26,463 bases of DNA, taken from positions 1-26,463 of the forward strand of contig NW_021834779.1 of the NCBI RefSeq assembly GCF_006345805.1, given 5' to 3'. The notes below the pieces were generated by a model, which saw only the letters and a program-made list of their open reading frames with translations, had not been told where the DNA came from and did no database searches. Below are positions 3,880 to 23,580 of the stretch, in pieces (the stretch's first letter is position 1; every line of letters begins with the position of its first letter). The DNA is from Octopus sinensis (Eukaryota). The position numbers and the translations under genes were made by a program.

Positions 3880-6274
3880 CTGAGGCACAGGTGGAAGTCT
3901 CCTTTGTGTTGTTGAGAATTTCCACTCATCTGGTGTCTGTTCCATCTCCAGAAAAAACTGACTTTTAGATTTTATTGTCTGAAGATTTCGGTTAAATATC
4001 TCTTCTGCATTTCTCGTTATTGCAACAGGATTGTTAGTCTGATACAGTAATTGTCTCATCTCAGTCTGAGAGAGAAAGTTGGGATTCTCTGCTGTTGTGG
4101 GTGAGTTATTTGTGTGATTAATACATCTGAAAACACACAGTGTTATGGACACTACAATAGCCACAGATAGTATTACAGCTGCTGCTACAATGATAATTAC
4201 CCAAGTCATATTCAGGTCGTGACCAGACTGGAATGGCACAGCAGTCAACATTGGAGATGTATCATTACTAACAAACAGTGTTAGTATGATAGCAGTTGTT
4301 GCTGATTGAACTGGAGTACCACCGTCTTTCACTATAAACTGCAGCTCATATGTTCCTGCATCATTTTGGTAAACTGTGCGAGAGAAAGATAACACACCAG
4401 TGTGTGAGTTCACTGTAAACAGGTTTTATCATTGGATCTCAGTATTCCATATGTGAGGAAAGCATTGTTTCCAGTGTCTTTGTCAGATGCTCTCAGAATT
4501 GTGATGTCCTTCTTACTGTGTGGATGGTAGTGGACATCGAGATTGTAAGGGTCATTATTAGGAAACGTAAAATACGGAGCATTATCATTTTTATCTAGAA
4601 TCTCAATAACAATATTGCAGTGTCACTGAGAGAAGGTGTTCCATTATCTTTCACTAAAACCTTGAACTTATAGATGTCTTTCATTTCTCGATCTATTGGT
4701 TGTGATGTAGAAATAAATCCATATTTTGTCAGTTGGAAAGGAATGTTATCATTGTTGTTATCATTGATGATAGAATATGTAAGTTGGCCTCCATCTTCAA
4801 GATCTGGGTCTGTAGCATTGATGAAGCCAATAGGGAAGTCAACTTTCTGGTTTTCATAGGTGAGGAATTGGAATGTTTCTTTGGTAAAATGTGGTTCTAC
4901 ATCATTGACATCAGTTACTTTGACAGAGAAATATTTTTTACTTTCTAGTTGAGGTGACCCCATGTCATGACACACAATAGATGCTTTATAGTGGTCCCTT
5001 ATCTCTCTGTCAAGGTGGCCCTTAACAATCATTTTATATTCTTTAGAATCTATTTTGGCAAGTTTAAATTTATCATGTTTTAAATCACAGATAACCTCAC
5101 CATTAGGTCCACTATCAGTGTCAGTGACCATAACATAAGCTATAAAACTATCTACTTCACTGTCTTCTGAAACTGCAGCTGAGCTCTCTGATAAAGGAGA
5201 TACAAAATCTATATTTATCAATGGAGCATTATTCTGGTTATTAACTATATGAATCTGAACTGCTGCAACAGATTTTTTTGGTGGTTTTCCTCCATCCCTT
5301 GCTTCAATAAATAACTTATAATACTGCATTTTACTAAAATGAAAGCTGTCATGTAAAAATAAATCTCCAGTTTTCTTATCTAATACAAAATATTTCTGGA
5401 TATTTCGAGATGTTTTATGGTTGAAATGATACGAAATCCTTCCATTGTCTCCAGAATCTTTATCTGTGGCCTTTAAAGTAAAAATTGGTAAATGTCTTTG
5501 ATGTGAATTACTTACAGATGTGTTGTACAGGTCGTGTGAAAATACAGGTGTGTTATCATTGACATCAGTTACAGATATGTGTACCTTGAGTGTAGCTGTT
5601 TTGGGAGGATTCCCTCCATCTTTAGCTTCCAAGGTTAACATGTATGAGTCTTTTACTTCCCTGTCTAACTTATCTTCAAGAATTATTTCAGGTGTGAAAA
5701 TACCTTTGTGTTTTGTGACAGAGAGTGAAAATGGTTCTCTTTTACTTTTCTTGATCATATATGTAATTTGGGAATTTTTTATTGAAATATCTTCATCAAT
5801 GGCATTTAAAAGTGGGATTTTAGTACCTTTAAAATCTCTCTCTAAAAACTTTATTGTGATTTCATTCTGTGGAAATTCTGGAGAATGGTCATTGATGTCA
5901 TCTATTAATATTTTAATTTTTAGAATCTTCATAAATGTTTTTCCTTTTCTCACTGCTACTTTAACTATTCTGGAACATTCTTTGTTGTATGTACACAGGG
6001 ACTCTGCATCCAGTGTCTGAGTTGTGTATAGTTTTCCTGAGTTGGTGACATTAAATAAGTGAGAACCACTCTCGACTGTCCTTTGTAGTTGTGTAAATGT
6101 AATGAGAGTGTGTTGTTGATGTGTGAGAGGGTGTGATAAGTTAGAGTCAACAGCAATGTCTCCTATATAGGTGTGAGGTCTGTCTTCTTCCTTGACATGG
6201 TATGTAATATCTATGGACAGTACAAGGGTGATCAGTAAATGTAGAAGACACAGTAGACCAATATATGCTGTCAT
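3880..6274 (-). CDS. Pcdh: Protocadherin A, large exon (signal peptide, EC1-EC6, TM, juxtamembrane), with two 1-nt deletions as assembled
   Basis: Cadherin motifs (DINDHSPEF, LDRE, DVNDNTPVF, AxDxD, DGGxP), EC1 C-X5-C, TM WVIIIVAAAVILSVAIVVSITLCVF, donor CCTCAG|GTAAAT. It is 2395 nt vs 2397 in C, with deletions at ~4617 (GG>G) and ~4424-4427 (T5>T4). Could be a pseudogene or an assembly error. Confidence 0.9.
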
Positions 6275-6432
6275 GTCTGGAATTCTTCATCACATTTCAG
6301 CAGGAGAAATTGCTACAAAACATGAGAAATACATTTAAAGTTTATTTATAATTCAACAAATCTAATTATATTTACAATAATCACTGTGACACATCTATTT
6401 CTATCTGGAAACGTGTTCCATTTGTCAAAATT

Positions 6433-8019
6433 GAACGTGGAGCAAAAAAAGGTACTTTTTACACAGTTTTTTTAAATATGTTTCCAAAAATATATTTTTC
6501 ATTGCAAAATCCTTTATAAACAACTGTGTTAAAATCTGAAGTTCTTAAATATACATCTTCAGGCTCCACAGCCCACGTGAAATTTTGAATAATGAGCAAA
6601 AAATCAATTTATAACACATTTGCATTCCTCATTTTATTTTTTATATTCATTGTTACAAATTGATTTTCTTTCGCGAAATTATTTAAAAACAAGAGTGTTA
6701 AAATCTCAAGGTCTACAATTTATATCTTCAGGGTCCACCACACACTTGAAATTTCGAAATTATGTGAAAGAAATAGACTTTGTGACTTTGTTTCCTTTAT
6801 TATTTTTAATACTAGGTCACTGAATATATGTGTTACATGAGGTCTAGATCACACACACATTAAAATAAAATTACATATAAACCAATTTTTGATTCTTGAC
6901 ACATTTTGGTGATAAAAATATTTCCAATAAAAAATGTCAAATAAATCTTTTGTTGCATTTTTCTTAAACACATTACACTGTTTGAAATGATGGAACATTT
7001 TTTCTATTTCTCCCAGATTTTAGTAATGCTTGATACTTTAGATAAAAGTTCAAGATTTTTAGTTTAACTGACTCAATTGTAACACAAGGGATGGATGCCT
7101 TTTGCCAAAGAAGTATTATCTTTTCTGCCTCAATCTCGAAAATTTGTTTAAATGAAGGATCTTTCTTAACTATATTCTTTTCTTTATCTTGTTCAAATAA
7201 AACACATTTTAGTATGTCCCACCTAGTTGGCAAAACTCACTTGCTAAGATCATATGGAGTACCAAATATTGGGCATTCAATATCATGGTGCGTTATTGGC
7301 TTACGAGTCATCACTAAATGTAAACAACACTAAATTTAACGTGATCGTTAATTTTAATACAATGGCCTAAAGTCAAGGTACAAAGCAGAAAACTTCACAC
7401 GTACCATGTACATCCACACACAATGACTGCTGCAGTGGCACTGGAGAGAAGTTCACACTCCCGTTCTCTATATAGTCAGTGCGAACCTCAAGATATTAAT
7501 CAATTGTATTGAAACTTGGTATGCAACCTCTTAAGGATACTATATTTACTGTTTTGCATTTTGCTATGTAGAAATATATATACATTACGACTTATAATCG
7601 ATGAAATCCAAAATTTGACCAAAAATAGCGATTTTTAAATTTTTCAATTGTGTTGCGGAGCCTGAAAAGCATATTTAATCGCAATGTTCTTTATACACTT
7701 TTCTTTTTAACCTAATTCACAACAAAATATCTATTTCTTTATTACGCATAAGGGGCTAAACACAGAGGGGACAGACAAGGACAGACATAGGTATTAAGTC
7801 GATTACATCAATCCCAGTGCATAACTGGTACTTAATTTATCGACCCCGAAAGGATGAAAGGCAAAGTCGACTTCGGCGGAATTTGAACTCACAACGTAAC
7901 GACAGACGAAATACGGCTACGCATTTCGCCCGGCATGCTAACGTTTCTGCCACCTCACTGCAACAAAATATCGATTCTTGGTTACCAATTTCGAAAGTTG
8001 CACTTTTCGCTCCACCCTA
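6433..8019 (-). mobile_element. Decayed DNA transposon (possibly hAT-related) with imperfect TIRs
   Basis: Left end GAACGTGGAGCAAAAAAAGGTACTTTT resembles the right-end reverse complement TAGGGTGGAGCGAAAAGTGCAACTTTC. Internal ORF remnant 6973-7233 (PTRWDIL...W.KASIP...KI) resembles transposase N-termini as I recall them. A ~70-100 bp direct repeat has period 169 (6526, 6695). Family assignment is uncertain. Confidence 0.5.
7735..7961 (-). mobile_element. tRNA-derived SINE nested in the DNA transposon
   Basis: Same head and body as 981-1208 (B-box GAGTTCAAATTCC) but a different 3' tail. Confidence 0.8.
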
Positions 8020-8617
8020 CTGAATAGTCTTCCGTGATCTAACAATACATAACGAGAGTTATCTCCCTCGAATAAACCTCACTCATTTATCTTAATTATT
8101 GTGTTGTTTATCTAGTCTCAATGTTTTACGTTGTCTCTCAGAAAATTCTGTTGTTGGATTAAACGTTAGCAATCATGTTTTAGGTTTAATGTTCATAATT
8201 TATCAATAGATTAATGTATTTCTTCAAAAATATATCTATACTGAAATAATAAAACACTATATTAAAAATGAGTATCAAAGTGAGATATGACATGTCTGGA
8301 GCTCAATTTAAATTGCTTGTCCCAACCCTCTGACCGATTACAGAAACTATTTGATAAAAATATCTACCGTCACAATCCTAACGATACAGTTACTTTTTCC
8401 TGTTCCGAGAACAATTTTGGAATGAATGTTTCTGCATTTCATTTTAATGTGGAAACAGGATGGTGGAGAGTAAAGAATCGAGGGAACTGTCTAATCCAAT
8501 ATGTACATATGATGATAAAGATGAGGAGATAGAAAATATAAATTCTCAACCCAAATGTCACCATGTTTGAACAGTTATAAGGATTGCTACATGCTGGAAT
8601 ATAACATTTACTCTCTG

Positions 8618-9165
8618 TCATCATCATCGTCGTTTAACGTCTGCTTTCCATGCTAGCATGGGTTGGACGGTTTGACTGGGGTCTGGGAAGCCAGGAGACT
8701 GCACCAGGCTCCAGTCTGATCTGGCAGTGTTTCTACAGCTGGGTGCCCTTCCTAACGCCAACCACTCCAAGAGTGCAGTGGGTACTTTTTTACGAGTCAC
8801 TGGCACAGGGGTCACAGGGGGCTGACATTGACTGAGATTGGATGGTGCTTTTTACGTGACACCGGCATGGAAGCGAGTCAAGGTGACATATCATCTTTGT
8901 CGTTTAACGTTCGCTTTCCATGCTGGCATGGGTTGGACAGTTTGACTGAGGTCTGGAGAGCCAGAAGGCTGCACCAGGCTCCAATCTGATCTGGCAAAGT
9001 TTCTACAACTGGATGCCCTTCCTAACGCCAACCACTCCGAGTGTAGTGGGTGATTTTACATGCCACTGGCATGAAAGCCAGTCAGGCAGTTCTGGCAATG
9101 ACCATGCTCAAAAGGTGTTTTTATGTGCTACCTGCACAGGAGCCAGTCTGGCGGCACTGGCAATG
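8618..9165 (-). mobile_element. Two tandem RTE-like retroelement 3' ends (8618-8889, 8890-9165)
   Basis: Both contain GCCCTTCCTAACGCCAACCACTCC and, on the minus strand, end in CCAACCCATGC.AGCATGGAAAGC..ACGTTAAACGAC(GAT)n. Confidence 0.7.
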
Positions 9166-9390
9166 AAATATACAGCTTAATTGAAGAAAGAGAACAAAAA
9201 ACGTAGTGACAATTGTGATTGACTTAGAAACAAGAGAGATCTTTTCATCAAATGAAGAAATAATCTCACAATATTTACATGCTAAAGGAAATAAATGTAT
9301 AATATTTGTTTGCAGTAAGGGACTATTTTATATAAAGTAAAAGAATTATGAATATTTTTTTTACCACAATTATTTACATAATTACAACAC

Positions 9391-9475
9391 GAGCTCCGTC
9401 CAAACCGTGCTGTCCGTCCAACCCGTGCTAGCACGGAAAACGGACGTTAAACGATGATGATGATGATGATGATGA
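9391..9475 (+). mobile_element. RTE-like 3' end with (GAT)n tail
   Basis: GTCCAACCCGTGCTAGCACGGAAAACGGACGTTAAACG(ATG)n, inverted relative to 8618-9165. Confidence 0.7.
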
Positions 9476-9960
9476 GATCAGAGAAATAACTGCAATGTGA
9501 CAATGGCATCAGTGATAAATAATGGTGTGATGTACTGGATGCTGTATACAAAATAACTCTTTAAATAATTGAAAAGTGGCTCTGAACGAAAAAACACCCT
9601 AATGACAATTTATGCTATTTCCAGAGATTTGTGAAAGCTGAAAAATAGGTGTCAGCTGAGCCTAAAACTGAATCAACAACACTAGACAGAGTTGACAATC
9701 ATCAAAGTCCTTTCCTTTGGACAATAATATTTGCTTCATGTCAATGTGCCATTCTGTTACCAGTAGGTGAAAGGATATGTTTAGCAATGAGAATTACATT
9801 GATAGGAGAAGGCAGAAAAGCTCTGTGAATTATCCACTAAATCAATAAAAAACTACATAGTCTTTTCATTGCTTTACATACAAATATGTATTTTTCAGAA
9901 AATATAACAAGACAATCTCTAGTTGACTTCTCTTACTCTCAACCTCTTTTGTAAAAGCAG

Positions 9961-9992
9961 CTTAGGATTAGAATATTTATTCTAATCCTAAG
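9961..9992. repeat. 32-bp near-perfect palindrome
   Basis: CTTAGGATTAGAATA-tt-TATTCTAATCCTAAG: perfect 15-bp arms with a 2-nt spacer. Confidence 0.95.
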
Positions 9993-10534
9993 AAATGCAT
10001 TTAAGAAGTACTAAAAATTATTAACAGAATATTATTGGTACGAAATCTCACACAGATGGATTAAAAGATGTTGATAAATTTGAAAGAAGATATTTAGTAG
10101 CCATATTTGTCCAATATCTTTAAGGAATACTTCATATTTAATTTGAATGAAATATTTAATTTATAGAAAAAATAATTATGAGAATTTGGTACAAAGGTGT
10201 TAATGACATACACAAAACAGTGTGTAAAATTTTGTGTAATAATTCACAATACATTTTATTCATAAGTAGATGGGGATTATTGAATATTTCGCTGGAAGTT
10301 AATAATGAAAACAAAAAATTGATAAGTATCAGACAGAGATATTTAGAACTATTTATTAAGTGAAGTATAATGATGATAATTAAACCTCCATTTATATGTT
10401 TCGTATTATACTGCTAAATATAATAAATTTCTGTGATGTTTTGGTATATTATAATAACAACTACATTAATGTGATGTATGATAGTTTGTTGAAAGACGAT
10501 GATATTATTTCTGATTCTCAAAATTCATCAATTG

Positions 10535-10643
10535 TTGTCAGAGTTAATAGATTTTAACAACAGTTGACAATATCGTCAGTTTCTAACTCACAATAAATAC
10601 CTTAAATAACAAATCTACATTAAATAATATTTATCAACATCTT
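10535..10643. other. Conserved non-coding element, copy 2 of 3
   Basis: Aligns with 17833-17941 and 1-62 while the neighbouring intron sequence has diverged. Confidence 0.65.
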
Positions 10644-10660
10644 AATTATAAAATATAAAC

Positions 10661-10844
10661 CTTTCTACCATAAGCACAAAGCCTGAAATTTTGGATGGGT
10701 AAGGGTTAATTGATTACATCAACCCCACTGCTTATCTGGTACTTATTTCATCCTGGTAGTCTTTGAAATCAGAAGGTAAAGACAAATAAAATGCCATAAA
10801 GCATTTTCTGTTGTCTGCCAATAATTCTGCAAACTTGCCACCTT
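10661..10844 (-). mobile_element. Degenerate tRNA-derived SINE
   Basis: Similar to 994-1208 with an internal deletion, and its flanks are homologous to those of the 994-1208 copy. Confidence 0.7.
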
Positions 10845-11164
10845 GAAAATAATATCAGTAATAACAATAAACATCCTTAGTTTATTATTTACAATATATA
10901 TATGTATATCTATAAAATGGATATTAATAATCTATCACAGTACATTGAAAATTTAATTAGTGAGTTATTACAACAAAACAGATATAAACTATACTGACAT
11001 ACATTAGTCAACACCCAGTCTTACTGGTTAGTGATGTCTTCTGACAGTGAAATAAAATATATATATATACAACTAGTTTAGACTATATTAGACCAATATT
11101 CTTTATAGCAATATATATGTTTTTTAATATTTCTTGTATAATGTTGTCTTGTGTGATTCTGACA

Positions 11165-11820
11165 TTAAAAGGTGTAATCCAGATTGAAGTAATTGCATTA
11201 CAATGTCTACTGCAGTTGTGTTGTTAATGGTGGAAGTGATGGCTAGATCTCTCGATCCTCCACTGTCCCAGTCCCTGTATATATACAACATGGCAGACAT
11301 TTTAGATATTATCCTTACCCTGTCTTTCATTAGAAACACAAATAATATAAATGTTATAATGAATATGAAAAGATAATAAGAGAGAGAGAGAGAGAGAGAG
11401 AGACTTACCTGCATTGTTTAATCCTTCACTGTAGTTGTGTGTGATGGATGATGTGTATCCTGCTGTAGTGTTCCACTCCAACTACTGCTGCTGCTGCTGT
11501 AGTGGTATTATAGTGGTACTGCTGCTGTTGTAGTAGTGTTCCTGTGTTACTGCTGCTGCTGCTGCTGTTCCTGTGTAACTGCTGATATAATAGTGTGACA
11601 GTTGCTGTATGTAGTGGGAGGTGAGATGTTAGCCAGATGCTGGTGTGTGCTAGTTACAACTCTATGTCCTCCACACACACACACACACACACAATTGTGT
11701 GTATGATGAACAAAGAAAAAAGCTATCAGCCTCACTTTCAATATTGAAAGAAATATAGAAAATCTCTCTCATCCAATAGGAAATTATTGCAATGTTGTCT
11801 GTGTCACACAAACACATCAA
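11165..11820 (-). promoter_or_regulatory. Conserved unit block, copy 2: candidate promoter plus leader exon of Pcdh A (donor 11409|11408)
   Basis: CCAAT 11773-11777, palindrome 11735-11750, (CA)n, CAG repeats, ATGCAG|GTAAGT. The matching acceptor is TTTTGTAG|CAATTT at 6313|6312. Confidence 0.55.
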
Positions 11821-12462
11821 ATAACAGAAGCCACATGGAAGTAAAGCAGTTTGTAGTGCTAAGAATTTCGTTTGTGTTTAATATTAATAAGCAAAGAAAC
11901 TTCATATTTTCCTTTTATCTTCAAGTTATAAACTATTTGATATTCTAGTCTAGAAATTAATCTTTATAATTATTTAAATTCAAAATTATATTTGACGCTA
12001 ATATTGATTTTAAACTGCTATATAATGGTGGAAAATAATTAATTCTAACTTTTTATCTTTGAATATTTATGAATTTGTCTGATGCTTAACTTACAAATTC
12101 TATAATACAATAAATATACGATTTCCTTAGTTGGTTTTGAAATATAATCATATATTTCAGGTAAATATTATGAAATGAGTTATGAACTACTTCATGTAAA
12201 ATTAGGGTTTTTAGATGAATATGAGAAAAATAAAATCTATAACAGTTGAAACAAACTAAAGAAGTATGGAAATATAGTTTAAAATATTAACATTATTTAA
12301 GTATCAGACATGGAAATTATACACCATAAGGAAGATACTGTTGGCCGTTTATGTGTGCGATGTGTGAAAAAAACATAGAGTTGATATTTTTATAGGAATA
12401 TAAAGTATTGTATAAGATTTGGTGTGAGAGAGAATCATTTAACAATAGTCATGGAACATCTA

Positions 12463-12542
12463 CTATGTTGGCTGTAGATAGGTATCTTGTATTTGTTGTC
12501 CCTTTAGTATTGTGGATGCAACTGGATTGTCATTGGTATATT
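12463..12542 (-). CDS. Pcdh: Protocadherin B, last coding exon
   Basis: Acceptor TTTTACAG|AA, 80 coding nt to TAG, one amino-acid change vs A (VAST vs VAAT). Confidence 0.7.
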
Positions 12543-12706
12543 CTGTAAAATATCAAATATACAAACACAAATTACATTTCAATATAACAACTCCAATATA
12601 TAAAGGTAGAAACATTGATCTTGTATTACACTAAGCATAACATTATATATTGTCCTACAGTAATAAAGGCAATTACATTTATATGTTATGTTTTGATAAA
12701 AGTTAC

Positions 12707-12851
12707 CTGGTTCTGCAGGTATCTCATCATATGGTTTAGTCTTGCCATTACTCTTGCTAGCTTCTCTGTCCTTTTGGGATGTTAAGGTGTCACTGTTGTA
12801 AGACATGATGGAACTGGTACGACGTCCTTGACTATGGATTGAATCACATCT
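12707..12851 (-). CDS. Pcdh: Protocadherin B, cytoplasmic exon (145 nt)
   Basis: Acceptor CTAATCCACAG|AGA, donor CCAG|GTAACT, same peptide as A and C. Confidence 0.8.
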
Positions 12852-13109
12852 CTGTGGATTAGAAAACAAAGCAGGGTGAAACAATATAAAATAAAAGTAG
12901 CAATTGCATCTATATTCTGGAATGTTCCTAGAATGAAAGAACAGATTAAAGCTTTGAATTCAACAAAAATATAATTGAAGATTTTCTTAGTAAATTATAA
13001 TAAACATTGAGGAGAGAATTAACAAATATATTAGTGCAAAGAAATATTTATAATTGCTTCTCCAAAAAGTAAATTTATGAAATGCCTCACCCGGGGCACT
13101 GATATTATA

Positions 13110-13481
13110 GGCGCAGGAGTGGCTGTGTGGTAAGTAGCTTGCTAACCAACCACACGGTTGCGGGTTCAGTCCCACTGCGTGGCATCTTGGGCAAGTGTCT
13201 TCTGCTATAGCCCCGGGCTGACCAATGCCTTGTGAGTGGATTTGGTAGACGGAAACTGAAAGAAGCCTGTCGTATATATGTATATATATGTATATGTGTG
13301 TGTGTTTGTGTGTCTGTGTTTGTCCCCCTAGCATTGCTTGACAACCGATGCTGGTGTGTTTAGGTCCCCGTCACTTAGCGGTTCGGCAAAAAGAGACCGA
13401 TAGAATAAGTACTAAAAGGTGGTGCTCCAGCATGGCCGCAGTCAAATGACTGAAACAAGTAAAAGAGTAAAGAGTAAGAGT
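13110..13481 (+). mobile_element. tRNA-derived SINE of a second family, in the intron of Pcdh B
   Basis: GGCGCAGGAGTGGCTGTGTGGTAAG (A-box-like), GGGTTCAGTCCC (B-box-like), central CTTGGGCAAGTGTCTT, internal TA/TG microsatellite, tail AAACAAGTAAAAGAGTAAAGAG. It is absent from the same intron in A and C. Confidence 0.8.
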
Positions 13482-13613
13482 ATCAATAATCTTTTATAAA
13501 GAAGATATAAGGAATATGATATGACATGTAAATGAAATAAAATATATAAAACATGTTTTCAGAAATATTGATCACAAATATCTAACAAGAAAATTATTTT
13601 AAAATATATTTAC

Positions 13614-16012
13614 CTGAGGCACAGGTGGAAGTCTCCTCTGTGTTGTTGAGAATTTCCACTCATCTGGTGTCTGTTCCATCTCCAGAAAAAACTGACTTTT
13701 AGATTTTATTGTCTGAAGATTTCGGTTAAATATCTCTTCTGCATTTCTCGTTATTGCAACAGGATTGTTAGTCTGATACAGTAATTGTCTCATCTCAGTC
13801 TGAGAGAGAAAGTTGGGATTCTCTGCTGTTGTGGGTGAGTTATTTGTGTGATTAATACATCTGAAAACACACAGTGTTATGGACACTACAATAGCCACAG
13901 ATAGTATTACAGCTGCTGCTACAATGATAATTACCCAAGTCATATTCAGGTCGTGACCAGACTGGAATGGCACAGCAGTCAACATTGGAGATGTATCATT
14001 ACTAACAACAGTGTTAGTATGATAGCAGTTGTTGCTGATTGAACTGGAGTACCACCGTCTTTCACTATAAACTGCAGCTCATATGTTCCTGCATCATTTT
14101 GGTAAACTGTGCGAGAGAAAGATAACACACCAGTGTGTGAGTTCACTGTAAACAGGTTTTTATCATTGGATCTCAGTATTCCATATGTGAGGAAAGCATT
14201 GTTTCCAGTGTCTTTGTCAGATGCTCTCAGAATTGTGATGTCCTTCTTACTGTGTGGATGGTAGTGGACATCGAGATTGTAAGGGTCATTATTAGGAAAC
14301 GTAAAATACGGAGCATTATCATTTTTATCTAGAATCTCAATAACAATATTGGCAGTGTCATTGAGAGAAGGTGTTCCATTATCTTTCACTAAAACCTTGA
14401 ACTTATAGATGTCTTTCATTTCTCGATCTATTGGTTGTGATGTAGAAATGAATCCATATTTTGTCAGTTGGAAAGGAATGTTATCATTGTTGTTATCATT
14501 GATGATAGAATATGTAAGTTGGCCTCCATCTCCAAGATCAGGGTCAGTAGCATTGATGAAGCCAATAGGGAAGTCAACTTTCTGGTTTTCATAGGTGAGG
14601 AATTGGAATGCCTCTTTGGTAAAATGTGGTTCTACATCATTGACATCAGTTACTTTGACAGAGAAATATTTTTTACTTTCTAGTTGAGGTGACCCCATGT
14701 CATGACACACAATAGATACTTTATAGTGGTCCCTTATTTCTCTGTCAAGATGACCCTTAACAATCATTTTATATTCTTTAGAATCTATTTTGGCAAGTTT
14801 AAACTTATCATGTTTTAAATCACAGATAACCTCACCATTAGGTCCATTATCGGTGTCAGTGACCATAACATAAGCTATAAAACTACCAATTTTACTTGCT
14901 TCTGAAACTGCTGCTGAGCTCTCTGATAAAGGAGATACAAAATCTATATTTATCAATGGAGCATTATTCTGGTTATTAATAATGTGAATCTGGACTTTGG
15001 TTACAGAACTTAAATGTGGATTTCCTTCATCCTGTGCTTCAATAAATAATTTATATGATTGCTTTTTACTAAATTGAAAGCTGTCATGTAAAAACAGATC
15101 TCCAGTCTTCTTATTTAATACAAAATATTTCTGGATATTTCGAGAGGTTTTGTGGTTGAAATGGTAAGAAATCTTTCCATTGTCTCCAGAATCTTTATCT
15201 GTGGCCTTTAAAGTAAAAATTGGCAAATGTCTTTGATGTGAATTACTTATAGAGATGTTGTAAAGTTTCTGTGAAAATACAGGTACATTATCATTGACAT
15301 CTGTCACAGATATGTGTACCTTGAGTATAGCTGTTTTGGGAGGGTTTCCTCCATCTTTAGCTTCCAGAGTCAACATATATGAATCTTTGAGTTCCCTGTC
15401 TAATTTGTCTCCTAAAACTAGAGCTGGTATGAAAACACCATCATATCGCTTTTCAACTGAGAGAGAAAATGGTTCTCTTTTACTTTTCTTAATCATATAT
15501 GTTATTTGTGAATTCTGTATTGAAATATCTTGATCAATGGCATTTAAAAGTGAGATTTTAGTACCTTGAAGGTGACTCTCAAGAAATTCAATTTGAACTT
15601 CATTCTTTGGGAATTCTGGTGAGTGGTCATTGATGTCTTCTATTAATATTTTTATCCTTAGAATCTTCATAAAAGTTTCTTCTTTCCTCACTGCTACTTT
15701 GACAATTTTGGAACATTCCTTGTTGTATGTACACAGAGACTCAGCATCCAGTGTTTGAGTAGTGTATAGTTTTCCTGAGTTGGTGACATTAAATAAGTGA
15801 GAACCACTCTCGACTGTCCTTTGTAGTTGTGTAAATGTAATGAGAGTGTGTTGTTGATGTGTGAGAGGGTGTGATAAGTTGGAGTCAACAGCAATGTCTC
15901 CTATATAGGTGTGAGGTCTGCCTTCTTCCTTGACATAGTATGTAATATCTATGGACAGTACAAGGGTGATCAGTAAATGTAGAAGACACAGTAGACCAAT
16001 ATATGCTGTCAT
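13614..16012 (-). CDS. Pcdh: Protocadherin B, large exon, with one 1-nt deletion as assembled just after EC6
   Basis: Same architecture as A and C, 2399 nt vs 2400 expected (B has one extra codon in EC2). AAA>AA at 14007-14008 shifts the frame before the TM. Donor CCTCAG|GTAAAT. Confidence 0.9.
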
Positions 16013-16394
16013 GTCTGGAATTCTTCATCACATTTGAGCAAGAGAAATTGCTATAAAGACAACAAAGATATTTAAATGAAATTAAATTTAAAAAACAATA
16101 ATTTTTCTAAATGTTATTGCTATTTCTTAATAAAGTCCGGTAGACACAACTGAATAATTTAAAATTAGCTTCTGTGATACAGGTTGGAAGCATTAGAAAG
16201 TATAATATTGGTTTATGGAAATCAATTGGTTCATGCTGAAAACATTGGTTCATGCTGATCAAAATACGAACTAAACAAAAGGTTAATAATATTCCTTTTA
16301 TGCCAGGAATACATCTCTTTATAGAGAAGCACCATGTTGATAGTGACAAAGAACAAGATCAAATGTGTAATGCAACTATACTTAAGAGAAGTAC

Positions 16395-16630
16395 TTCATC
16401 ATCACCAACACCATAGTCGTCATTGTTGGTGGCGGCAGTGGACTCATTGTCATCAGCATTATCTAATGTCCATTTTCCATGCTGGCATATATTGGGCAGT
16501 TTGATAAGATCTGAAGAGTGACAGAGCGGCATCGGGCCCTAATATCACATGGTTTCTATGGCTTGATGCCCTTCTTAATGCTAAATTTTTTATAGTGTAT
16601 ACTGGATGCCTTTCCTGATATTGGTACCAG
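16395..16630 (-). mobile_element. Old RTE-like 3' end fragment
   Basis: TTTTCCATGCTGGCAT and GATGCCCTTCTTAATGC resemble the 8618-9165 copies, with a degenerate CAT-repeat tail. Confidence 0.5.
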
Positions 16631-17832
16631 TGACGTTGTTAAGTAACTTAAAAAAACAAAGAAAAAAATAAACCTCCTTAATTGAGTAGGAGTGTAGCAA
16701 AATTTAGAAATTAAACAAGATTAGTATTAAAAACTACTCTGATGAAGCAGTGCTAAGGTACAGAGGAAGGCGAGGGGAACAATTAGGTATGATCCACAGA
16801 TCTATTGTTGCAGTTACACCATGTCTCCATCTAGCTGAGAACCAGACTTTGATATGTGATGTAAAGTGATGGTCTGAGCCAATGCAAGAACTTTTATATG
16901 GTCATTCTGTCTGTGGTAGTAAAAGGCAGCCCAACCTTCAAATCTGATTCTACAGTCTCACAAATAGATGAATATACTTGATAAAGTAATCCTGAATATA
17001 ATAAACCAGAAATGATGACAGAATGTTGACAGCTTGAATAATGCAGACTCTGACAAGGAAATATTAAAACCCTTTAAATTTACATCACAGAGAAAGATTT
17101 TAGTCGTTGGAGATTAATGATATATACAATATGAAAACAACAGCAATTCTACTCTAAGCTGATGGTAGGTCCTAATCAAAAGAGAAGTAAAATATATTGT
17201 GAAATTAATGAACAGTAGTCTCTCGAGATATTTAATTAATGAAGTTTAGGTTTGCAGAGCGAAAGATTAAGGACATGATAACCTAAATGTACTTTATTGT
17301 GTCTTGTTGGTTGGAATTTCTCTCTTTTGTTACCGTATTTCTGTTGGAATACATTGCTTTTGTTTCGATCAATTTCAAAACTACAGCAAAAATTTAGTAA
17401 AATAACTTTGTCAAAATGAATCTGGTGATTGGAACACAAATCAAGATGAAATTTGATGGAAAGCTTTAATTTAAAGCACTTTAAGAAGGAAGTTAATATC
17501 ATAAAACCTGGCACAATTGGAGGCAAGTTGGTATCAGAGAGGGTGAAAGACATTTGATAATAATATACCTGTTTCACAGAAATGTAGGATAAGTGTATCT
17601 AAGAAACCTAATAACCTGGATAGAAGATGTCTTGATTTATTTCACAAATAACTGACAAAGAATAGATTATAAAATTATGTGGAAATATTTTACAAAAATG
17701 GGAATTATAAAATGGTGGAGTGATATGTTTTTGATGGAAAAATATGTATAATTATCTTCACAAAATATGCAGATAACTTTCTTATCAAATTAATTGTAAT
17801 AAAAGTAATTTAATCCCTATTTAATCCATCTC

Positions 17833-17941
17833 TTGTCAGGATTAATATATTTTAACAACAGATGACAATATCATCAATTTATATCTCCTGACAAATATCT
17901 TAAATAACAAATCTACACTAAATAATATTTATCAACATCTT
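17833..17941. other. Conserved non-coding element, copy 3 of 3
   Basis: Aligns with 10535-10643 and 1-62. Confidence 0.65.
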
Positions 17942-18097
17942 TTTTACATAACTTTGGCTTTGTAAATGAACAATCTCATGTGTTTATTTAAATGGTCTAC
18001 AAATGCATACAGCGAGTTTCTTTGCTCTAGAAGTCGGAAAGATACTTGGCAGGAAATGGAAATGAAAACTGAAATTAGGACAATACATAATAATATT

Positions 18098-18172
18098 GAT
18101 GATGATGATGATGATGATAAATATTCTTGATCTATTCTATACAAAAGAATACATAACAGATATTCAAAAGGG

Positions 18173-18216
<44 letters not shown>

Positions 18217-18217
18217 T
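18098..18217. repeat. (GAT)n and (TA)n(CA)n microsatellites
   Basis: Read directly from the sequence. Confidence 0.85.
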
Positions 18218-18434
18218 ACGGATAAGGTGATCTGTTAGAGTTAATTGAAGCTACAGCAAATTAAGATTTAATTAGCGAACTATTACAACAACAAAGATAC
18301 AAGCAACATCGATAGACATTATTAACACCTAGTTTCATTGGGTACAAATCAATGTTTTGTGACTTTAAATGATTATATACTTTACACAAATGTATATAAT
18401 ATATATTGTAGCGATACATATGTGATTCTGAGAT

Positions 18435-18931
18435 TAAAAGATGTAATCCAGTTCAAAGTAATTGTATTACTGCAGTTATTGTTGTTAATGGTGGCAGTGA
18501 TGGCTAGATCTCTCGATCCTCCACTGTCCCAGTCCCTGTATATATACAACATGGCAGACATTTTAGATATTATCCTTACCCTGTCTTTCATTAGAAACAC
18601 AAATAATATAAATGTTATAATGAATATGAAAAGATAATAAAGAGAAGAAAGGGAGAGAGAGAGACTTACCTGCATTGTTTAATCCTTCACTGTAGTTGTG
18701 TGTGATGGATGATGTGTATCCTGCTGTAGTGTTCCACTCCAACTGCTGCTACTGCTGCTGTAGTGGTATTATAGTGGTACTGCTGCTGTTGTAGTAGTGT
18801 TCCTGTGTTACTGCTGCTGCTGCTGCTGTTCCTGTGTAACTGCTGATATAATAGTGTGACAGTTGCTGTATGTAGTGGGAGGTGAGATGTTAGCCAGATG
18901 CTGGTGTGTGCTAGTTACAACTCTATGTCCT

Positions 18932-18964
<33 letters not shown>

Positions 18965-19088
18965 TGTGTGTATGATGAACAAAGAAAAAAGCTATCAGCC
19001 TCACTTTCAATATTGAAAGAAATATAGAAAATCTCTCTCATCCAATAGGAAATTACTGCAATGTGGTCTGTGTCACACAAACACATCA
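18435..19088 (-). promoter_or_regulatory. Conserved unit block, copy 3: candidate promoter plus leader exon of Pcdh B (donor 18670|18669)
   Basis: CCAAT 19042-19046, palindrome 19004-19019, longest (CA)n, ATGCAG|GTAAGT. The acceptor is CTTTATAG|CAATTT at 16051|16050. Confidence 0.55.
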
Positions 19089-19731
19089 AATAAAAGAATT
19101 CATATTACACTGAAGCAGCTTGATAATTTACAGGGGTATAATTAGTAATATGACTTTATTATATATTTAGTCTTAGTAAAAAGGAATTTCTATTAAAAAA
19201 TTTATAATTTTATAATTATATTTCTTAGTATCATGCAAGTTGTGAGATGACAATTCAGTAATTTCTATGAAAAAAATTTGACTAAACTTTCAAGGGAAAA
19301 TAGAGAATGTTTTATCAATGTGAGGGATAAATTACTTCTTGAGTTGATACAATGAGAAAAAGCTAAGAGAAAAGTTGTAAATAAAGGTAAAACAAATGAA
19401 AGTACATTTTAGAATTGGTGTCAAATGAAAACAACATAATTAAACTTCCGAGGATGACTCAGACTAATTTATCTATGCTTAGTGAAATGTCTATACTAAA
19501 ACTGACGGGAAAATAACTATAATAATTAACTATGGTAATGTAGAGTTGGGTGTTTGTAACAATTAATTTACCACAGATGGAAATTAGGGGTCATAAGAGA
19601 TGCCGCTGTAAGGCCCCTTACGTGTGTGATGGATGAAAGAAACATAGAGTTGATATTTTTATATGAATATAAAGTATTGTATAAGATTTGGTGTGAGAGG
19701 GAATCATTTAACAATAGTCATGGAACATCTA

Positions 19732-19811
19732 CTATGTTGGCTGTAGATAGGTATCTTGTATTTGTTGTCCCTTTAGTATTGTGGCTGCCACTGGATTGTC
19801 ATTGGTATATT
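19732..19811 (-). CDS. Pcdh: Protocadherin C, last coding exon
   Basis: Acceptor TTTTGCAG|AA, 80 coding nt to TAG. Confidence 0.7.
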
Positions 19812-19975
19812 CTGCAAAATATCAAATATACAAACACAAATTACATTTCAATATAACAACTCCAATATATAAAGATAGAAACATTGATCTTGTATTACAC
19901 TAAGCATAACATTATATATTGTCCTACAGTAATAAAGGCAATTACATTTATATGTTATGTTTTGATAAAAGTTAC

Positions 19976-20120
19976 CTGGTTCTGCAGGTATCTCATCATA
20001 TGGTTTAGTCTTGCCATTACTCTTGCTAGCTTCTCTGTCCTTTTGGGATGTTAAGGTGTCACTGTTGTAAGACATAATGGAACTGGTGCGACGTTCTTGA
20101 CTATGGATTGAGTCACATCT
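19976..20120 (-). CDS. Pcdh: Protocadherin C, cytoplasmic exon (145 nt)
   Basis: Acceptor CTAATCAACAG|AGA, donor CCAG|GTAACT. Confidence 0.8.
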
Positions 20121-20849
20121 CTGTTGATTAGAAAACAGAGTGAAACATAATGTTAAAAAGAGAAAAACATCTACATTTGCATTCTAGTATATTCCCTGTG
20201 TTATAGAAAAAAGGAACATTTTATTTTTCAAAATAAAAAATATTATAATTAAATATTTTCTTATTTAATTAAAATGCATTAGAGTCAAAAATAAATCATA
20301 ACAAATGTATAGGTTAGATATTAATGCACAAATTTTAAATATATCTATTTGGTTAAGTATAAAATGAAGAAAAAATCATTGAATCTTTCACAAAATAAAT
20401 GCAGTATATTTTTGTAATAAATCACTTAAATGTACAAAATACACGAAATAGAATATAATATGTAACAAATACAAGGTTCGGCTGAACACTTCGTAGGCTC
20501 AACAAGATCCTCACATAGAATGTGACCAAACAAGGTTTATTTTGCAACATAATCACAGAAAAAGGGATCTTGCATTAATACAGAGTTAGATCACTCCTAA
20601 TAAAACAGTCTTTATATTAAGAGTATTGTATTTCTATAATAGGCATTGTGACCGCTTTGCTATCACTAAATAAAGAATAATTAATTCAGAATGTCAAAAT
20701 AAACTATGACATTTGATTATTAAAAACAATACATGTACATTAGAATCTAAAGTTGATATTTTATAGAAATATTTGAACATACATCACTAATGGAAAGAAT
20801 ACTCTTGTATTTAAAATCATAAGGATATCAAAAACAAGATAATATTTAC

Positions 20850-23246
20850 CTGAGGCACAGGTGGAAGTCTCCTTTGTGTTGTTGAGAATTTCCACTCATC
20901 TGGTGTCTGTTCCATCTCCAGAAAAAACTGACTTTTAGATTTTATTGTCTGAAGATTTCGGTTAAATATCTCTTCTGCATTTCTCGTTATTGCAACAGGA
21001 TTGTTAGTCTGATACAGTAATTGTCTCATCTCAGTCTGAGAGAGAAAGTTGGGATTCTCTGCTGTTGTGGGTGAGTTATTCGTGTGATTAATACATCTGA
21101 AAACACACAGTGTTATGGACACTACAATAGCCACAGATAGTATTACAGCTGCTGCTACAATGATAATTACCCAAGTCATATTCAGGTCGTGACCAGACTG
21201 GAATGGCACAGCAGTCAACATTGGAGATGTATCATTACTAACAAACAGTGTTAGTATGATAGCAGTTGTTGCTGATTGAACTGGAGTACCACCGTCTTTC
21301 ACTATAAACTGCAGCTCATATGTTCCTGCATCATTTTGGTAAACTGTGCGAGAGAAAGATAACACACCAGTGTGTGAGTTCACTGTAAACAGGTTTTTAT
21401 CATTGGATCTCAGTATTCCATATGTGAGGAAAGCATTGTTTCCAGTGTCTTTGTCAGATGCTCTCAGAATTGTGATGTCCTTCTTACTGTGTGGATGGTA
21501 GTGGACATCGAGATTGTAAGGGTCATTATTAGGAAACGTAAAATACGGAGCATTATCATTTTTATCTAGAATCTCAATAACAATATTGGCAGTGTCATTG
21601 AGAGAAGGTGTTCCATTATCTTTCACTAAAACGTTGAACTTATAGATATCTTTCATTTCTCGATCTATTGATTGTGATGTAGAAATGAATCCATATTTGG
21701 TCAGTTGGAAAGGAATGTTATCATTGTTGTTATCATTGATGATAGAATATGTAAGTTGGCCTCCATCTCCAAGATCAGGGTCTGTAGCATTGATGAAGCC
21801 AATAGGGAAGTCAACTTTCTGGTTTTCGTAGGTGAGGAATTGGAATGTCTCTTTGGTAAAATGTGGTTCTACATCATTGACATCAGTTACTTTGACAGAG
21901 AAATATTTTTTACTTTCTAGTTGAGGTGACCCCATGTCATGACACACAATAGATACTTTATAGTGGTCCCTTATTTCTCTGTCAAGATGGCCCTTAACAA
22001 TCATTTTATATTCTTTAGAATCTATTTTGGCAAGTTTAAATTTATCATGTTTTAAATCACAGATAACCTCACCATTAGGTCCACTATCAGTGTCAGTGAC
22101 CATAACATAAGCTATAAAACTACCAATTTTACTTGCTTCAGAAACTGCTGCTGAACTCTCTGTTAAAGGAGATACAAAATCTATATTTATCAATGGAGCA
22201 GTATTCTGGTTATTAATAATGTGAATCTGGACTTTGGTTAAAGAACTTAAGGGTGGATTTCCTCCATCTCGTGCTTCAATAAATAATTTATAAGACTGCA
22301 TTTTAGTAAACTGAAAATTGTCATGTAAAAACAAATCTCCAGTGTTCTTATCTAAAACAAAATATTTCTGGATATTTCGAGATGTTTTATGGTTGAAATG
22401 ATAAGAAATCTTTCCATTGTCTCCAGAATCTTGATCTGAAGCTTTTAAAGTAAGAATTGGTAAATGTCTTTGATGTGAATTACTTATAGAGATGTTGTAG
22501 ATTTCCTGTGGAAATACAGGTGTATTATCATTAACATCTGTTACAGATATGTGTACTTTGAGTGAAGCTGTTTTTGGTGGGTTCCCTCCATCTTTAGCTT
22601 CTAGTATCAACATATAATAGTCATTGAGTTCCCTGTCTAATCTATCTTCTAGAATTAGCGCAGGTATGAAAATACCCTTCTGTTTTGTGACAGAGAGAGA
22701 AAATGGTTCGCTTTTACTTTTTTTAATTATATATGTAATTTGAGAATTTTTGATTGAAATATCTTTATCAATTGCATTCAGAAGAGGGATTTTGCTTCCT
22801 TTACTCTCTCTTTCTGAAAAATGAATCTTAACTTCATTTTGTGGAAATTCTGGAGAATGGTCATTGATGTCTTCTATTAATATTTTTATTTTGAGAATTT
22901 TCATAAATGCTTCTTCTTTCCTCACTGCTACTTTAACTATTCTGGAACATTCCCTGTTGTATGTACACAGAGACTCAGCATCCAGTGTTTGAGTAGTGTA
23001 TAGTTTTCCTGAGTTGGTGACATTAAATAAGTGAGAACCACTCTCGACTGTCCTTTGTAGTTGTGTAAATGTAATGAGAGTGTGTTGTTGATGTGTGAGA
23101 GGGTGTGATAAGTTAGAGTCAACAGCAATGTCTCCTATATAGGTGTGAAGTCTGTCTTCTTCATTGACATGGTATATAATATCTATGGACAGTACAAGGG
23201 TGATCAGTAAATGTAGAAGACACAGTAGACCAATATATGCTGTCAT
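20850..23246 (-). CDS. Pcdh: Protocadherin C, intact large exon (799 codons; predicted spliced protein 873 aa)
   Basis: Uninterrupted ORF with signal peptide, six cadherin repeats, TM helix and donor CCTCAG|GTAAAT (phase 0). Confidence 0.95.
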
Positions 23247-23580
23247 GTCTGGGATTCTTCATCACATTTCAGCAGGAGAAATTGCTATAAAAGACAACAA
23301 ATATTTAAACATTAAGTACAATAAAATAAGTTCATTTGAAGTTATAATAACCATTATATAAATGATTATTGATTGTATGTCTTTTACATGTGCTCTAAAT
23401 AATTCAAAATGTTTCTTTTAATCTAACAAGCTAAGTGACAATATATAGATGATGCCGCTTCTTTGGAAAAAGGCAACAACCTTTCTGTGTTTAGAATTGC
23501 ATTTAGAATGTTTTGGCATGACAAGTTTCATAATTTACTATTGAGAGAGTACTTAGAAAGGGACAACGTCTTGATATTGA

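Follow-up and report, generated by a model that had tools for sequence, protein, structure and literature searches.

The protocadherins have expanded independently in octopods and in vertebrates (PMC9068888), and both groups offer described systems with which the locus reported here can be compared. In vertebrates, region-limited gene conversion acts on the alpha, beta and gamma clusters (Noonan et al. 2004 as cited; Etlioglu et al. 2016, PMC4978886), and a characteristic dS profile serves as its signature (PMC4978886). Clustered and delta-2 protocadherins form antiparallel EC1-4 trans dimers (Nicoludis 2016, PMC5001838; Goodman 2016, PMC5106212); contact between the EC1 b6-b7 loop and the EC4 loop after b1a is reported by Nicoludis 2016. 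The octopod arrays are described (Albertin et al. 2015, cited in PMC6339937 and PMC9068888; Albertin et al. 2022, PMC9068888) as head-to-tail series of multi-exon protocadherin genes that resemble one another closely, with ectodomain and transmembrane segment on one large exon; their diversity arises by whole-gene duplication, and gene conversion has already been suggested to explain their similarity.

In the literature that we searched, a scope that leaves Albertin 2015 and Wang & Ragsdale 2017 outside, we found no domain-resolved analysis of octopus protocadherin arrays and no binding measurements on a cephalopod protocadherin. Relative to that literature, an EC2-EC3 core set against homogenised ends, short cassette-like tracts and the covariation of an EC1 and an EC4 loop are undescribed.

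A piece of an octopod protocadherin array

The window, meaning the whole stretch of DNA analysed, is an entire unplaced scaffold of Octopus sinensis (26.5 kb). It holds three tandem protocadherin genes, A, B and C, all on the minus strand, whose top protein matches are protocadherins from O. sinensis, O. vulgaris and Argonauta. With its layout, its large exon and its whole-gene duplication, the window is a piece of an octopod tandem array, carrying three complete three-exon paralogues in one orientation:

20850 to 23246, minus strand: copy C large coding exon, 799 codons (signal peptide, EC1-EC6, transmembrane segment, start of the cytoplasmic tail)
19977 to 20120, minus strand: copy C exon 2, 48 codons (RCDSIHSQERR...), AG and GT on its flanks
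19732 to 19812, minus strand: copy C exon 3, 26 codons and stop
13614 to 16012, minus strand: copy B large coding exon, with one extra codon in the EC2 hairpin
12708 to 12851, minus strand: copy B exon 2
12463 to 12543, minus strand: copy B exon 3 and stop
3880 to 6274, minus strand: copy A large coding exon
3372 to 3515, minus strand: copy A exon 2
3127 to 3207, minus strand: copy A exon 3 and stop

Exons 2 and 3 are present separately in every gene, bordered by AG/GT. The large exon is intact in copy C, with the 3' border CAG|GTAAAT, and frame-broken in copies A and B in this assembly, a point absent from the initial annotation. Copy A lacks one base near 4617 (CC to C) and another near 4427 (A5 to A4), and copy B one near 14008 (TTT to TT); each of these 1-bp deletions is within a short homopolymer inside the homogenised part of the exon.

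Divergence between the copies

The three minus-strand open reading frames and the four variable patches of the initial annotation were all found in the sequence. Its EC2-EC3 spans (A 5222-5878, B 14957-15616, C 22194-22850) correspond to aa 133-351, with one more codon in B, by arithmetic from the ATGs at 6274, 16012 and 23246 and with domain limits from Pfam hits and DxNDxxP linkers. The concentration of differences there also held, with 59 of the 83 amino-acid-variable columns falling in 27% of the length (binomial p = 1.6e-16), as did the identity of the signal peptide (aa 1-21) and, at the protein level, of the EC1 core (aa 34-97). EC6, the transmembrane segment and the exon-encoded cytoplasmic part have no nonsynonymous and one or two synonymous differences. 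The divergent block is somewhat wider than EC2-EC3, taking in the final third of EC1 and the opening quarter of EC4 as well (about aa 95-375), and divergence dips in mid-EC3.

22122 to 22964, minus strand: copy C divergent core, aa 95-375, paralogue dS about 0.4-0.7
5150 to 5992 and 14885 to 15730, minus strand: its equivalents in A and B
20850 to 22049, minus strand: copy C homogenised 3' part, aa 400-799, paralogue dS 0.01-0.07, essentially identical from EC6 to the exon end
3880 to 5077 and 13614 to 14812, minus strand: its equivalents in A and B

Codons that vary only synonymously cluster in EC2-EC3 as well (45 of 75, p = 3e-9), which the initial annotation had not stressed.

Synonymous rates along the exon

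Outside EC2-EC3, where it is about 0.5, synonymous divergence amounts to 0.05-0.07, and from EC6 to the cytoplasmic tail it drops to about 0.008; within the window trio, dS is 0.65-0.79 in EC2, 0.29-0.39 in EC3, 0.06-0.10 in EC5 and 0 in EC6. The profile recurs among 10 O. sinensis, 7-11 O. vulgaris and 3 Argonauta copies. Even the most divergent paralogue pair (Os_1/Ov_6) has a dS of 0.54 in the core, 0.26 in the 5' part and 0.04 in the 3' part, and the ratio of paralogue to between-genus dS falls from 0.55 in the core to 0.10 in the 3' part. GC3 is lower in the core (0.21-0.26) than in the homogenised ends (0.31-0.36). Between species, EC6-to-tail has a dS of 0.006, colder than non-coding DNA (about 2.5%); this goes beyond conversion alone, so that synonymous constraint may add to the apparent homogeneity.

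The vertebrate parallel drawn by the initial annotation stands for the rates, dS being maximal in EC2/EC3 and minimal in EC5/EC6 and the cytoplasmic part, and for the six EC repeats on a single large exon, with EC2-EC3 carrying the phylogenetic and specificity signal. It does not extend to locus organisation, as the octopus genes have no shared constant exons. In the mouse and Xenopus values taken from PMC4978886, the highest dS is 1.4-7.9 times the lowest, compared with about 26 times in octopus (EC2 vs EC6).

It is scarcely credible that the identical 3' halves reflect assembly collapse or polishing of a repeat, or that A and B are pseudogenes that differ from C through decay, even though the window is unplaced in its long-read assembly, A and B contain frameshifts, a second unplaced scaffold has a copy with EC2-3 identical to B, and the chromosomal version of the region is structurally different. 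The same dS profile emerges from the independent O. vulgaris and Argonauta assemblies, and differences among A, B and C have an omega of about 0.2, not about 1. At least nine of the 11 single-base frameshifts located in 24 copies are length changes of short homopolymers or dinucleotides, and none of the 11 lies in the core, which makes up 37% of the exon (0.63^11 = 0.006 under uniformity). Their types and their absence from the core fit uncorrected consensus errors where read placement is not unique.

Orthologous cores and conversion tracts

The window is collinear with O. vulgaris OX597827.1, where the order C-B-A corresponds to P0121-P0146-P0032. In EC2-3, protein identity is 92.7-95.5% to the orthologue vs 84.5-88.1% to the best paralogue of the same species, and in patches 2-4 dN is 0.007-0.025 between orthologues vs 0.10-0.36 between paralogues.

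The initial annotation had cited, for vertebrates, the escape of EC2-EC3 from gene conversion. In the octopus genes the escape is not simple: patches 1 and 4 have been carried between paralogues on tracts of about 90-150 bp, transfers that postdate the split of O. sinensis and O. vulgaris, whereas vertebrate EC2-3 are described as largely spared.

5801 to 5888, minus strand: copy A gene-conversion tract, exon nt 387-474, aa 129-158, spanning patch 1
22689 to 22839, minus strand: copy C cluster of C-specific changes, exon nt 408-558, aa 136-186

Across the tract in copy A, 24 consecutive informative sites agree with the O. vulgaris orthologue of C and not with that of A. The cluster in copy C reaches from patch 1 to a point just short of patch 2 (first residue aa 187). 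Neither the O. vulgaris orthologue nor the chromosomal C-like copy shares its changes; the latter has a cluster of unique changes of its own. The cluster in copy C would stem from conversion by an unsampled donor; among the sampled copies, no donor was found for two of the three core tracts, the best matches being 88-91%. Orthologue divergence peaks at aa 122-186 (15-17% vs a non-coding background of 2-3%), and the observed value of a PHI-type test was reached in 0 of 1000 permutations. For the exon ends, rate heterogeneity and mosaicism in the sequence suggest gene conversion, and the 3' part yielded no donor-recipient event.

Test for positive selection

The initial annotation had attributed the diversity to diversifying selection on a homophilic recognition surface, which would have driven amino-acid change in EC2-EC3 while the rest was conserved. 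The strong concentration of amino-acid differences there agrees with this, as do a core omega 2-4 times that of EC6-tail, the location of the patches on homologues of contact elements and, on parsimony trees, the counts of nonsynonymous and synonymous changes at codons 148 (17 and 1.8), 151 (13.5 and 1.5) and 177 (12.5 and 0.5). However, dN/dS, which the initial annotation itself had named as a check, speaks against it, being about 0.2 everywhere, EC2-EC3 included (window trio omega 0.1-0.37 along the whole exon), and 0.3-0.5 in the four patches, which were picked post hoc for amino-acid variability. No codon has a significant nonsynonymous excess on these trees (best uncorrected p 0.075 among 300 codons), although positive selection has been reported at vertebrate EC2-3 sites. 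Synonymous divergence in EC2-EC3 is raised 7-10-fold, as much as nonsynonymous divergence and beyond the reach of protein-level selection; much of the recent change comes in blocks mixing both kinds of difference; and the codons most variable among paralogues are constrained between orthologues (omega 0.33, compared with 0.05 at invariant codons). Pervasive positive selection is thus an unlikely cause.

The variable patches and the EC1/EC4 loop pair

The model predicted for EC1-4 (mean pLDDT 86) is a rod that superposes on clustered and delta-2 protocadherin structures (the set of PDB 6vfr, 6vg1, 5dzw and 5szo) with TM 0.7-0.8. In EC2 the patches lie on the b1 strand with its loop and on the b4-b5 hairpin, and in EC3 on the b1 strand and the b6-b7 loop; in vertebrate gamma-B dimers, these elements bear the residues named as EC2:EC3 contacts. 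In a mapping based on a sequence alignment of about 30% identity and a short list of contact residues from papers, 10 of 15 vertebrate EC2:EC3 contact positions fall on variable octopus residues, whereas EC1:EC4 contact positions fall on invariant, largely hydrophobic ones (M115, I117, Y380, M382). By analogy, this lends indirect support to a recognition role of the patches.

Two loops behave as charge-swapped partners:

22911 to 22916 (C), 15677 to 15682 (B) and 5939 to 5944 (A), minus strand: codons 111-112, EC1 b6-b7 loop, EE in C and B, GK in A
22122 to 22136 (C), 14885 to 14899 (B) and 5150 to 5164 (A), minus strand: codons 371-375, EC4 loop after strand b1a, ASKIG in C and B, DSEVD in A

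Their covariation is perfect against a near-zero background linkage. They form the only long-range pairs with r2 = 1 in 21 copies, and the pair 112-371 ranks first of 26,686 in 113 octopod sequences, in statistics that ignore phylogeny. This charge swap argues for an antiparallel EC1-4 contact, the two loops being those that touch in the dimers of Nicoludis 2016. By alignment the octopus b6-b7 loop is three residues longer than that of gamma-B2, and the contact geometry is a putative one. The charge-based classes may be analogous to the gamma-A/gamma-B barrier, where E41 is paired with K338/R340.

These observations also bear on whether the core is simply less constrained and, once diverged, mechanically shielded from conversion, with no role in recognition. 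Homologous conversion requires stretches of identity, so that divergence is self-reinforcing, and omega is indeed higher in the core than at the ends. Yet core omega is far below 1, isoform-specific residues are conserved between orthologues, and the core is more diverged (p-distance 13-15%) than the mostly non-coding paralogous blocks from exon 2 to downstream (3-10%). The variation lies on homologues of interface elements, and the EC1/EC4 loop pair is kept in matched charge states against a background without linkage. We regard purely neutral mechanics as very unlikely.

A mosaic exon and its possible role in recognition

The EC2-EC3 mosaic is probably best explained mainly by region-limited gene conversion under purifying selection, without measurable positive selection and with a role in recognition. 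The synonymous rate profile, the trans-specific orthology of the core and the conversion tracts are its observed part. Long-tract gene conversion or unequal crossing-over would hold the paralogues near-identical over the signal peptide and EC1 core, from late EC4 onwards into the cytoplasmic tail, and in exons 2-3. The central 0.85 kb (EC1 end, EC2, EC3, EC4 start) keeps old, distinct isoform lineages, each persisting as a syntenic O. vulgaris orthologue under purifying selection (omega about 0.2). The core is not sealed: occasional short tracts transplant cassette-like blocks, patches 1 and 4 among them, so that variation is reshuffled and not erased. Its diversity may be kept either by selection against homogenising conversions or by divergence that blocks long tracts.

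These proteins would probably bind in trans the way clustered and delta protocadherins do in vertebrates, through antiparallel EC1-4 dimers. Isoform identity would be defined by the variable elements of EC2 and EC3, and a coarser compatibility class by the two-state, charge-complementary contact of the EC1 and EC4 loops, and the common EC5-EC6, transmembrane segment and tail would confer the same cis and signalling properties.

Gene identity and organisation

Within the 26,463-bp window, three long open reading frames on the minus strand share about 94% DNA identity, and of these copy C is intact. The large-exon product of C matches the Pfam Cadherin family across five stretches (E = 8.8e-75) and Cadherin_2 (PF08266), the protocadherin-type first repeat, at aa 24-106; the DxNDxxP linkers are without variation across the family alignment, and these calcium-binding motifs, together with several cadherin (EC) repeats and the N-terminal repeat, identify the genes as protocadherins of the cadherin superfamily. 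A hydrophobic stretch, WVIIIVAAAVILSVAIVVSITLCVF, follows EC6 as a single-pass transmembrane segment. No match to a classical cadherin cytoplasmic domain was found in the Pfam scan of the large-exon product, outside which lie the 74 residues encoded by exons 2 and 3. The closest relatives are ‘protocadherin beta-15-like’ proteins, with 87-93% identity in O. sinensis, 65-92% in O. vulgaris and 69-84% in Argonauta hians (63-98% overall across the three).

The large exon of each copy spans 2.4 kb (799 codons) and ends in CAG followed by the GT donor GTAAAT; it carries ectodomain, transmembrane segment and short tail, and such exons stand in tandem, as in the clustered protocadherins of vertebrates. 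Vertebrate clusters share constant exons, whereas the octopus genes A, B and C each have an exon 2 of 144 nt and an exon 3 of 78 nt of their own within the next 0.4-0.8 kb, so that they are complete tandem genes and not variable exons feeding one common constant set. This agrees with the published description of cephalopod protocadherins as complete tandem genes (PMC9068888). Octopod array genes as nearest kin, head-to-tail order and synteny with another octopod array place the three genes in an octopod tandem array.

Upstream of the ATG, homology among the paralogues reaches only about 50-65 bp, from a putative splice acceptor (window 23247-23310, 16013-16076 and 6275-6339). About 38 nt 5' of the ATG of A, B and C there is an acceptor-like pyrimidine tract and AG (TTTTATAG followed by CAATTTCTC...), from which it looks as though each gene has an unannotated 5' non-coding exon further upstream. 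Downstream of every unit lies a block of 0.7-1.1 kb with 87-95% identity (1363-2235, 10953-11829, 18417-19121 and 24782-25876) that contains a 31-bp tandem motif (CTGCTGCTGTAGTAGTATTACAGTGGTA...; 1896-1970, 11483-11564, 18752-18822 and 25274-25348); the block could be a repeat element or a piece of the duplication unit. On the plus strand at 5520-6020, antisense to EC2-EC3 of copy A, there is a 166-aa open reading frame that has no counterpart of equal length in B or C and is probably a chance one.

Diversity among the copies and tests of selection

The initial annotation had located the diversity of the three proteins in EC2-EC3, and its span corresponds to aa 133-351 of each copy, where 59 of the 83 amino-acid-variable columns fall (p = 1.6e-16). 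All four short patches that it had quoted as strongly differing were found, and A, B and C indeed share one protein sequence in the signal peptide, at aa 34-97 and from EC6 onwards. The divergent block is wider than that span, at about aa 95-375, and codons with synonymous changes only are as clustered in EC2-EC3 (45 of 75) as the amino-acid changes are. Within the window trio, dS runs at 0.65-0.79 in EC2, 0.29-0.39 in EC3, 0.06-0.10 in EC5 and zero in EC6, while dN/dS stays at 0.1-0.37 per domain in all domains (pooled, about 0.20 in EC2-EC3 and about 0.2 elsewhere). Since synonymous sites behave alike here, clustered amino-acid differences alone are no evidence for positive selection.

Adding paralogues from the O. 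sinensis chromosome, O. vulgaris and Argonauta for comparison, we found paralogue dS to peak in EC2 and EC3 and to bottom out in EC5, EC6 and the tail: in ten O. sinensis copies it is 0.61 in EC2, 0.35 in EC3, 0.11 in EC4, 0.04 in EC5, 0.02 in EC6 and 0.01 in the tail, and the profile, which is that of region-limited concerted evolution, recurs in the other two species. Even in the patches, which had been picked for their protein differences, dN/dS reaches only 0.51 in the window trio, 0.34 in O. sinensis and 0.29 in O. vulgaris, with dS higher still (the ranges used were off by one codon in three patches, and the outcome is unaffected). A SLAC-like parsimony count on local neighbour-joining trees assigned 620 synonymous and 572 nonsynonymous changes to 300 core codons (dN/dS 0.24), both counts being inflated by recombination; in this low-powered, recombination-disturbed test no codon had a significant nonsynonymous excess (best p = 0.075, uncorrected). 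The claim of diversifying selection is therefore unsupported in the dN/dS sense: neither the region, at about 0.2, nor the patches, at 0.3-0.5, rise above 1, and no codon does so significantly, as the criterion set in the initial annotation would have needed. A few fast codons (148, 151 and 177) may be candidate targets of selection.

Homogenised ends

In vertebrate work (PMC4978886), such a per-domain dS profile is read as the signature of region-limited gene conversion, and the ratio of highest to lowest dS in the mouse and Xenopus rows read is 1.4-7.9; in octopus, dS in EC2 is about 26 times that in EC6. The profile is not an assembly artefact, because the independent O. vulgaris and Argonauta assemblies repeat it. 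Even the most divergent paralogue lineage (copies Os_1 and Ov_6), with dS of 0.54 in the core and 0.26 in the 5' part, has only 0.04 in the 3' part (aa 400-799), and relative to the Octopus-Argonauta distance, paralogue divergence is 0.55 in the core and 0.10 in the 3' part. Ancestry along the exon is mosaic: cores pair with those of the other species, and the ends differ among paralogues about as little as between orthologues (EC6-tail dS 0.008 vs 0.006). The homogenised ends have a GC3 of 0.31-0.36 and the core one of 0.21-0.26, a difference compatible with GC-biased conversion.

From EC6 to the exon end (20850-21542, 13614-14305 and 3880-4570), dS between O. sinensis and O. vulgaris orthologues is 0.006, or 3 of 481 synonymous sites, compared with a divergence of about 2.5% in flanking non-coding sequence; two further orthologue pairs give 0.045. 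This conservation between species is not explained by conversion alone, and one idea is synonymous constraint, for example from RNA-editing structures.

Conserved cores and short conversion tracts

The window has a collinear counterpart in O. vulgaris, at 79.33-79.37 Mb of OX597827.1, where the order C, B, A is matched by the gene models P0121, P0146 and P0032. The EC2-EC3 identity of each copy is 92.7-95.5% with the O. vulgaris counterpart and 84.5-88.1% with the best O. sinensis paralogue, and in patches 2-4 dN is 0.007-0.025 between orthologues vs 0.10-0.36 among paralogues. With identified tracts masked, orthologue dN/dS is 0.33 at the codons most variable among paralogues and 0.05 at invariant codons. 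The cores represent old isoforms that both species have kept; residues variable between isoforms yet conserved within an isoform are those nominated as specificity residues in vertebrate work (PMC5106212). Orthology of cores between Octopus and Argonauta, sought for dating, was not found, the cores grouping by genus.

EC2-EC3, which the initial annotation noted as escaping gene conversion in vertebrates, is still reached by it in octopus, where tracts of about 90-150 bp exchange patches 1 and 4. Non-coding divergence in the orthologous alignment is about 2-3%, with a spike of 15-17% at aa 122-186 in both C and A. In this block, identity of O. sinensis A with the O. vulgaris orthologue of C reaches 96-97.5%, while with A's own orthologue it is only 80-83%, and copy A equals the orthologue of C at 24 consecutive informative sites (nt 387-474). 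When window C, the C-like chromosomal copy Os_3 and the O. vulgaris copy are compared as a trio, the 11 unique changes of the last are scattered, whereas 26 of the 45 in window C fall inside nt 408-558 and 19 of the 41 in Os_3 inside nt 927-1029. A PHI-type statistic for the core was exceeded in none of 1000 permutations, and linkage among common sites drops to r2 of about 0.07 past 50 nt. From these observations we read the tracts as carrying blocks between paralogues, patches 1 and 4 included, and the divergent patches are partly a matter of cassette exchange. Neither the 24 DNA copies nor the protein set contained a donor for the C tract or the Os_3 tract.

Related copies occur elsewhere in O. 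sinensis. The C unit with its upstream flank (window 20842-24531, plus strand) is 97.0% collinear with positions 14839-18529 of locus L003 (CM016872.1, about 60.52 Mb), which holds Os_3 and runs on into sequence like the region downstream of B; a 42.6-kb unplaced scaffold (model P0147) carries a copy with EC2-3 identical to B. The C-like chromosomal copy and the B-identical scaffold copy could reflect a copy-number difference, unequal crossing-over or haplotig redundancy.

Frameshifts and annotation

The reading frames of A and B are broken by one-base deletions, a point that the initial annotation had not mentioned.

Single-base deletions in the window (minus-strand genes)
near 4617, copy A: CC to C, in a short homopolymer
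near 4427, copy A: A5 to A4, in a short homopolymer
near 14008, copy B: TTT to TT, in a short homopolymer

Among 24 copies we located 11 single-base frameshifts; three of them fall in the O. vulgaris orthologues of A, B and C (loci L009 and L010), one per gene and each different. In at least 9 of the 11, the length of a short homopolymer or dinucleotide run is altered. Assembly error is favoured over pseudogenes because none of the 11 lies in the divergent core; the pattern fits, and suggests, residual long-read consensus errors where reads lack unique placement. Pseudogene decay as a source of the differences among A, B and C was rejected on dN/dS and frameshift placement.

The NCBI model of copy C (P0007, 764 aa; window 20817-23246) removes EC2 (about aa 137-246) as an intron although the reading frame is continuous, and the model of B (P0129) shows similar distortion. 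Automatic gene models of the octopus protocadherin array are unreliable.

A predicted recognition interface

An AlphaFold2 (AF2) model of EC1-4 of copy C (mean pLDDT 86) has a predicted extended fold that Foldseek matches, at E of about 1e-43 and TM scores of 0.68-0.81, to the EC1-4 structures of the delta-2 and clustered protocadherins Pcdh18, Pcdh8.1, gamma-C4 and alpha-4. All of the matched structures form antiparallel EC1-4 dimers (PMC5001838, PMC5106212).

Positions of the four variable patches in the AF2 model
Patch 1: EC2 b1 strand and following loop
Patch 2: EC2 b4-b5 hairpin
Patch 3: EC3 b1 strand
Patch 4: EC3 b6-b7 loop and start of b7

When the contact residues named in those papers are carried over to this single-chain model by sequence alignment to gamma-B2 (5t9t), all eight EC1:EC4 positions fall on invariant or nearly invariant octopus residues (M115, I117, Y380 and M382 among them; E68 is D in one copy), and 10 of 15 EC2:EC3 positions fall on variable ones, with at least one in every patch.

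The strongest evidence for an interface comes from covariation in the sequences, with all statistics uncorrected for phylogeny. Codons 111-112, in the EC1 b6-b7 loop, read GK or EE, and codons 371-375, in the EC4 loop after b1a, read DSEVD or ASKIG; in none of the 24 DNA copies is the association of the two states broken, and these codons give the only long-range site pairs with r2 = 1 in the exon. Between B and its O. vulgaris orthologue the two loop sites differ jointly. In 113 distinct octopod sequences, the charge-complementary pair 112-371 is the top of 26,686 covarying pairs (MIp 0.77, the next being 0.55); K-D occurs 51 times, E with a non-acidic residue 34 times, E-D twice and K-A once. 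The net charges of the two loops are anticorrelated (Spearman -0.73). These loops are reported to touch in clustered protocadherin dimers (Nicoludis et al., PMC5001838), and because they are far apart in the rod-like monomer, the covariation is most simply read as an antiparallel contact between molecules. Between EC2 and EC3 the signal is weak: mutual information in 44 close sequences, which again takes no account of phylogeny, is not enriched at contact pairs predicted from gamma-B, though the pair 190-248 adjoins a predicted one.

The proposal of a homophilic recognition surface under diversifying selection has two parts: dN/dS does not support the selection, and the case for a recognition surface, from the fold match, the mapped contact positions and the EC1/EC4 charge covariation, is indirect but coherent. 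In the literature searched we found no assays of isoform-specific homophilic binding on cephalopod protocadherins.

Implications

Earlier work (PMC9068888, PMC6339937) already describes the arrays with their large exon and suggests gene conversion in general terms; the papers searched, whose coverage of the key literature is incomplete, contained no domain-resolved analysis for cephalopods, no short cassette-like tracts and no EC1/EC4 covariation. Protocadherins expanded independently in cephalopods and vertebrates (PMC9068888), and the octopus array resembles vertebrate clusters in three ways: its EC2-EC3 core is diverse, its membrane-proximal and cytoplasmic parts are homogenised, and its EC1:EC4 contact loops covary. 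The array repeats the vertebrate pattern cleanly and independently, the cause first assigned to it being corrected here, and the resemblance suggests that the antiparallel EC1-4 recognition logic has been reused. Positions 112 and 371 and the four patches supply concrete residues on which this can be tested.

We further offer, as a speculation that we rate as rather unlikely, that short-tract conversion in octopod arrays may not only homogenise but also generate diversity: a limited set of interface cassettes (the EC2 b1 strand and loop, the EC2 hairpin and the EC3 b6-b7 loop) would be shuffled among neighbouring paralogues into new EC2:EC3 combinations, and a charge-swapped lock between the EC1 and EC4 loops, kept by selection over 780 bp of unlinked sequence, would define two compatibility classes. 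If true, it would represent an independent and mechanistically distinct path to a protocadherin recognition code.
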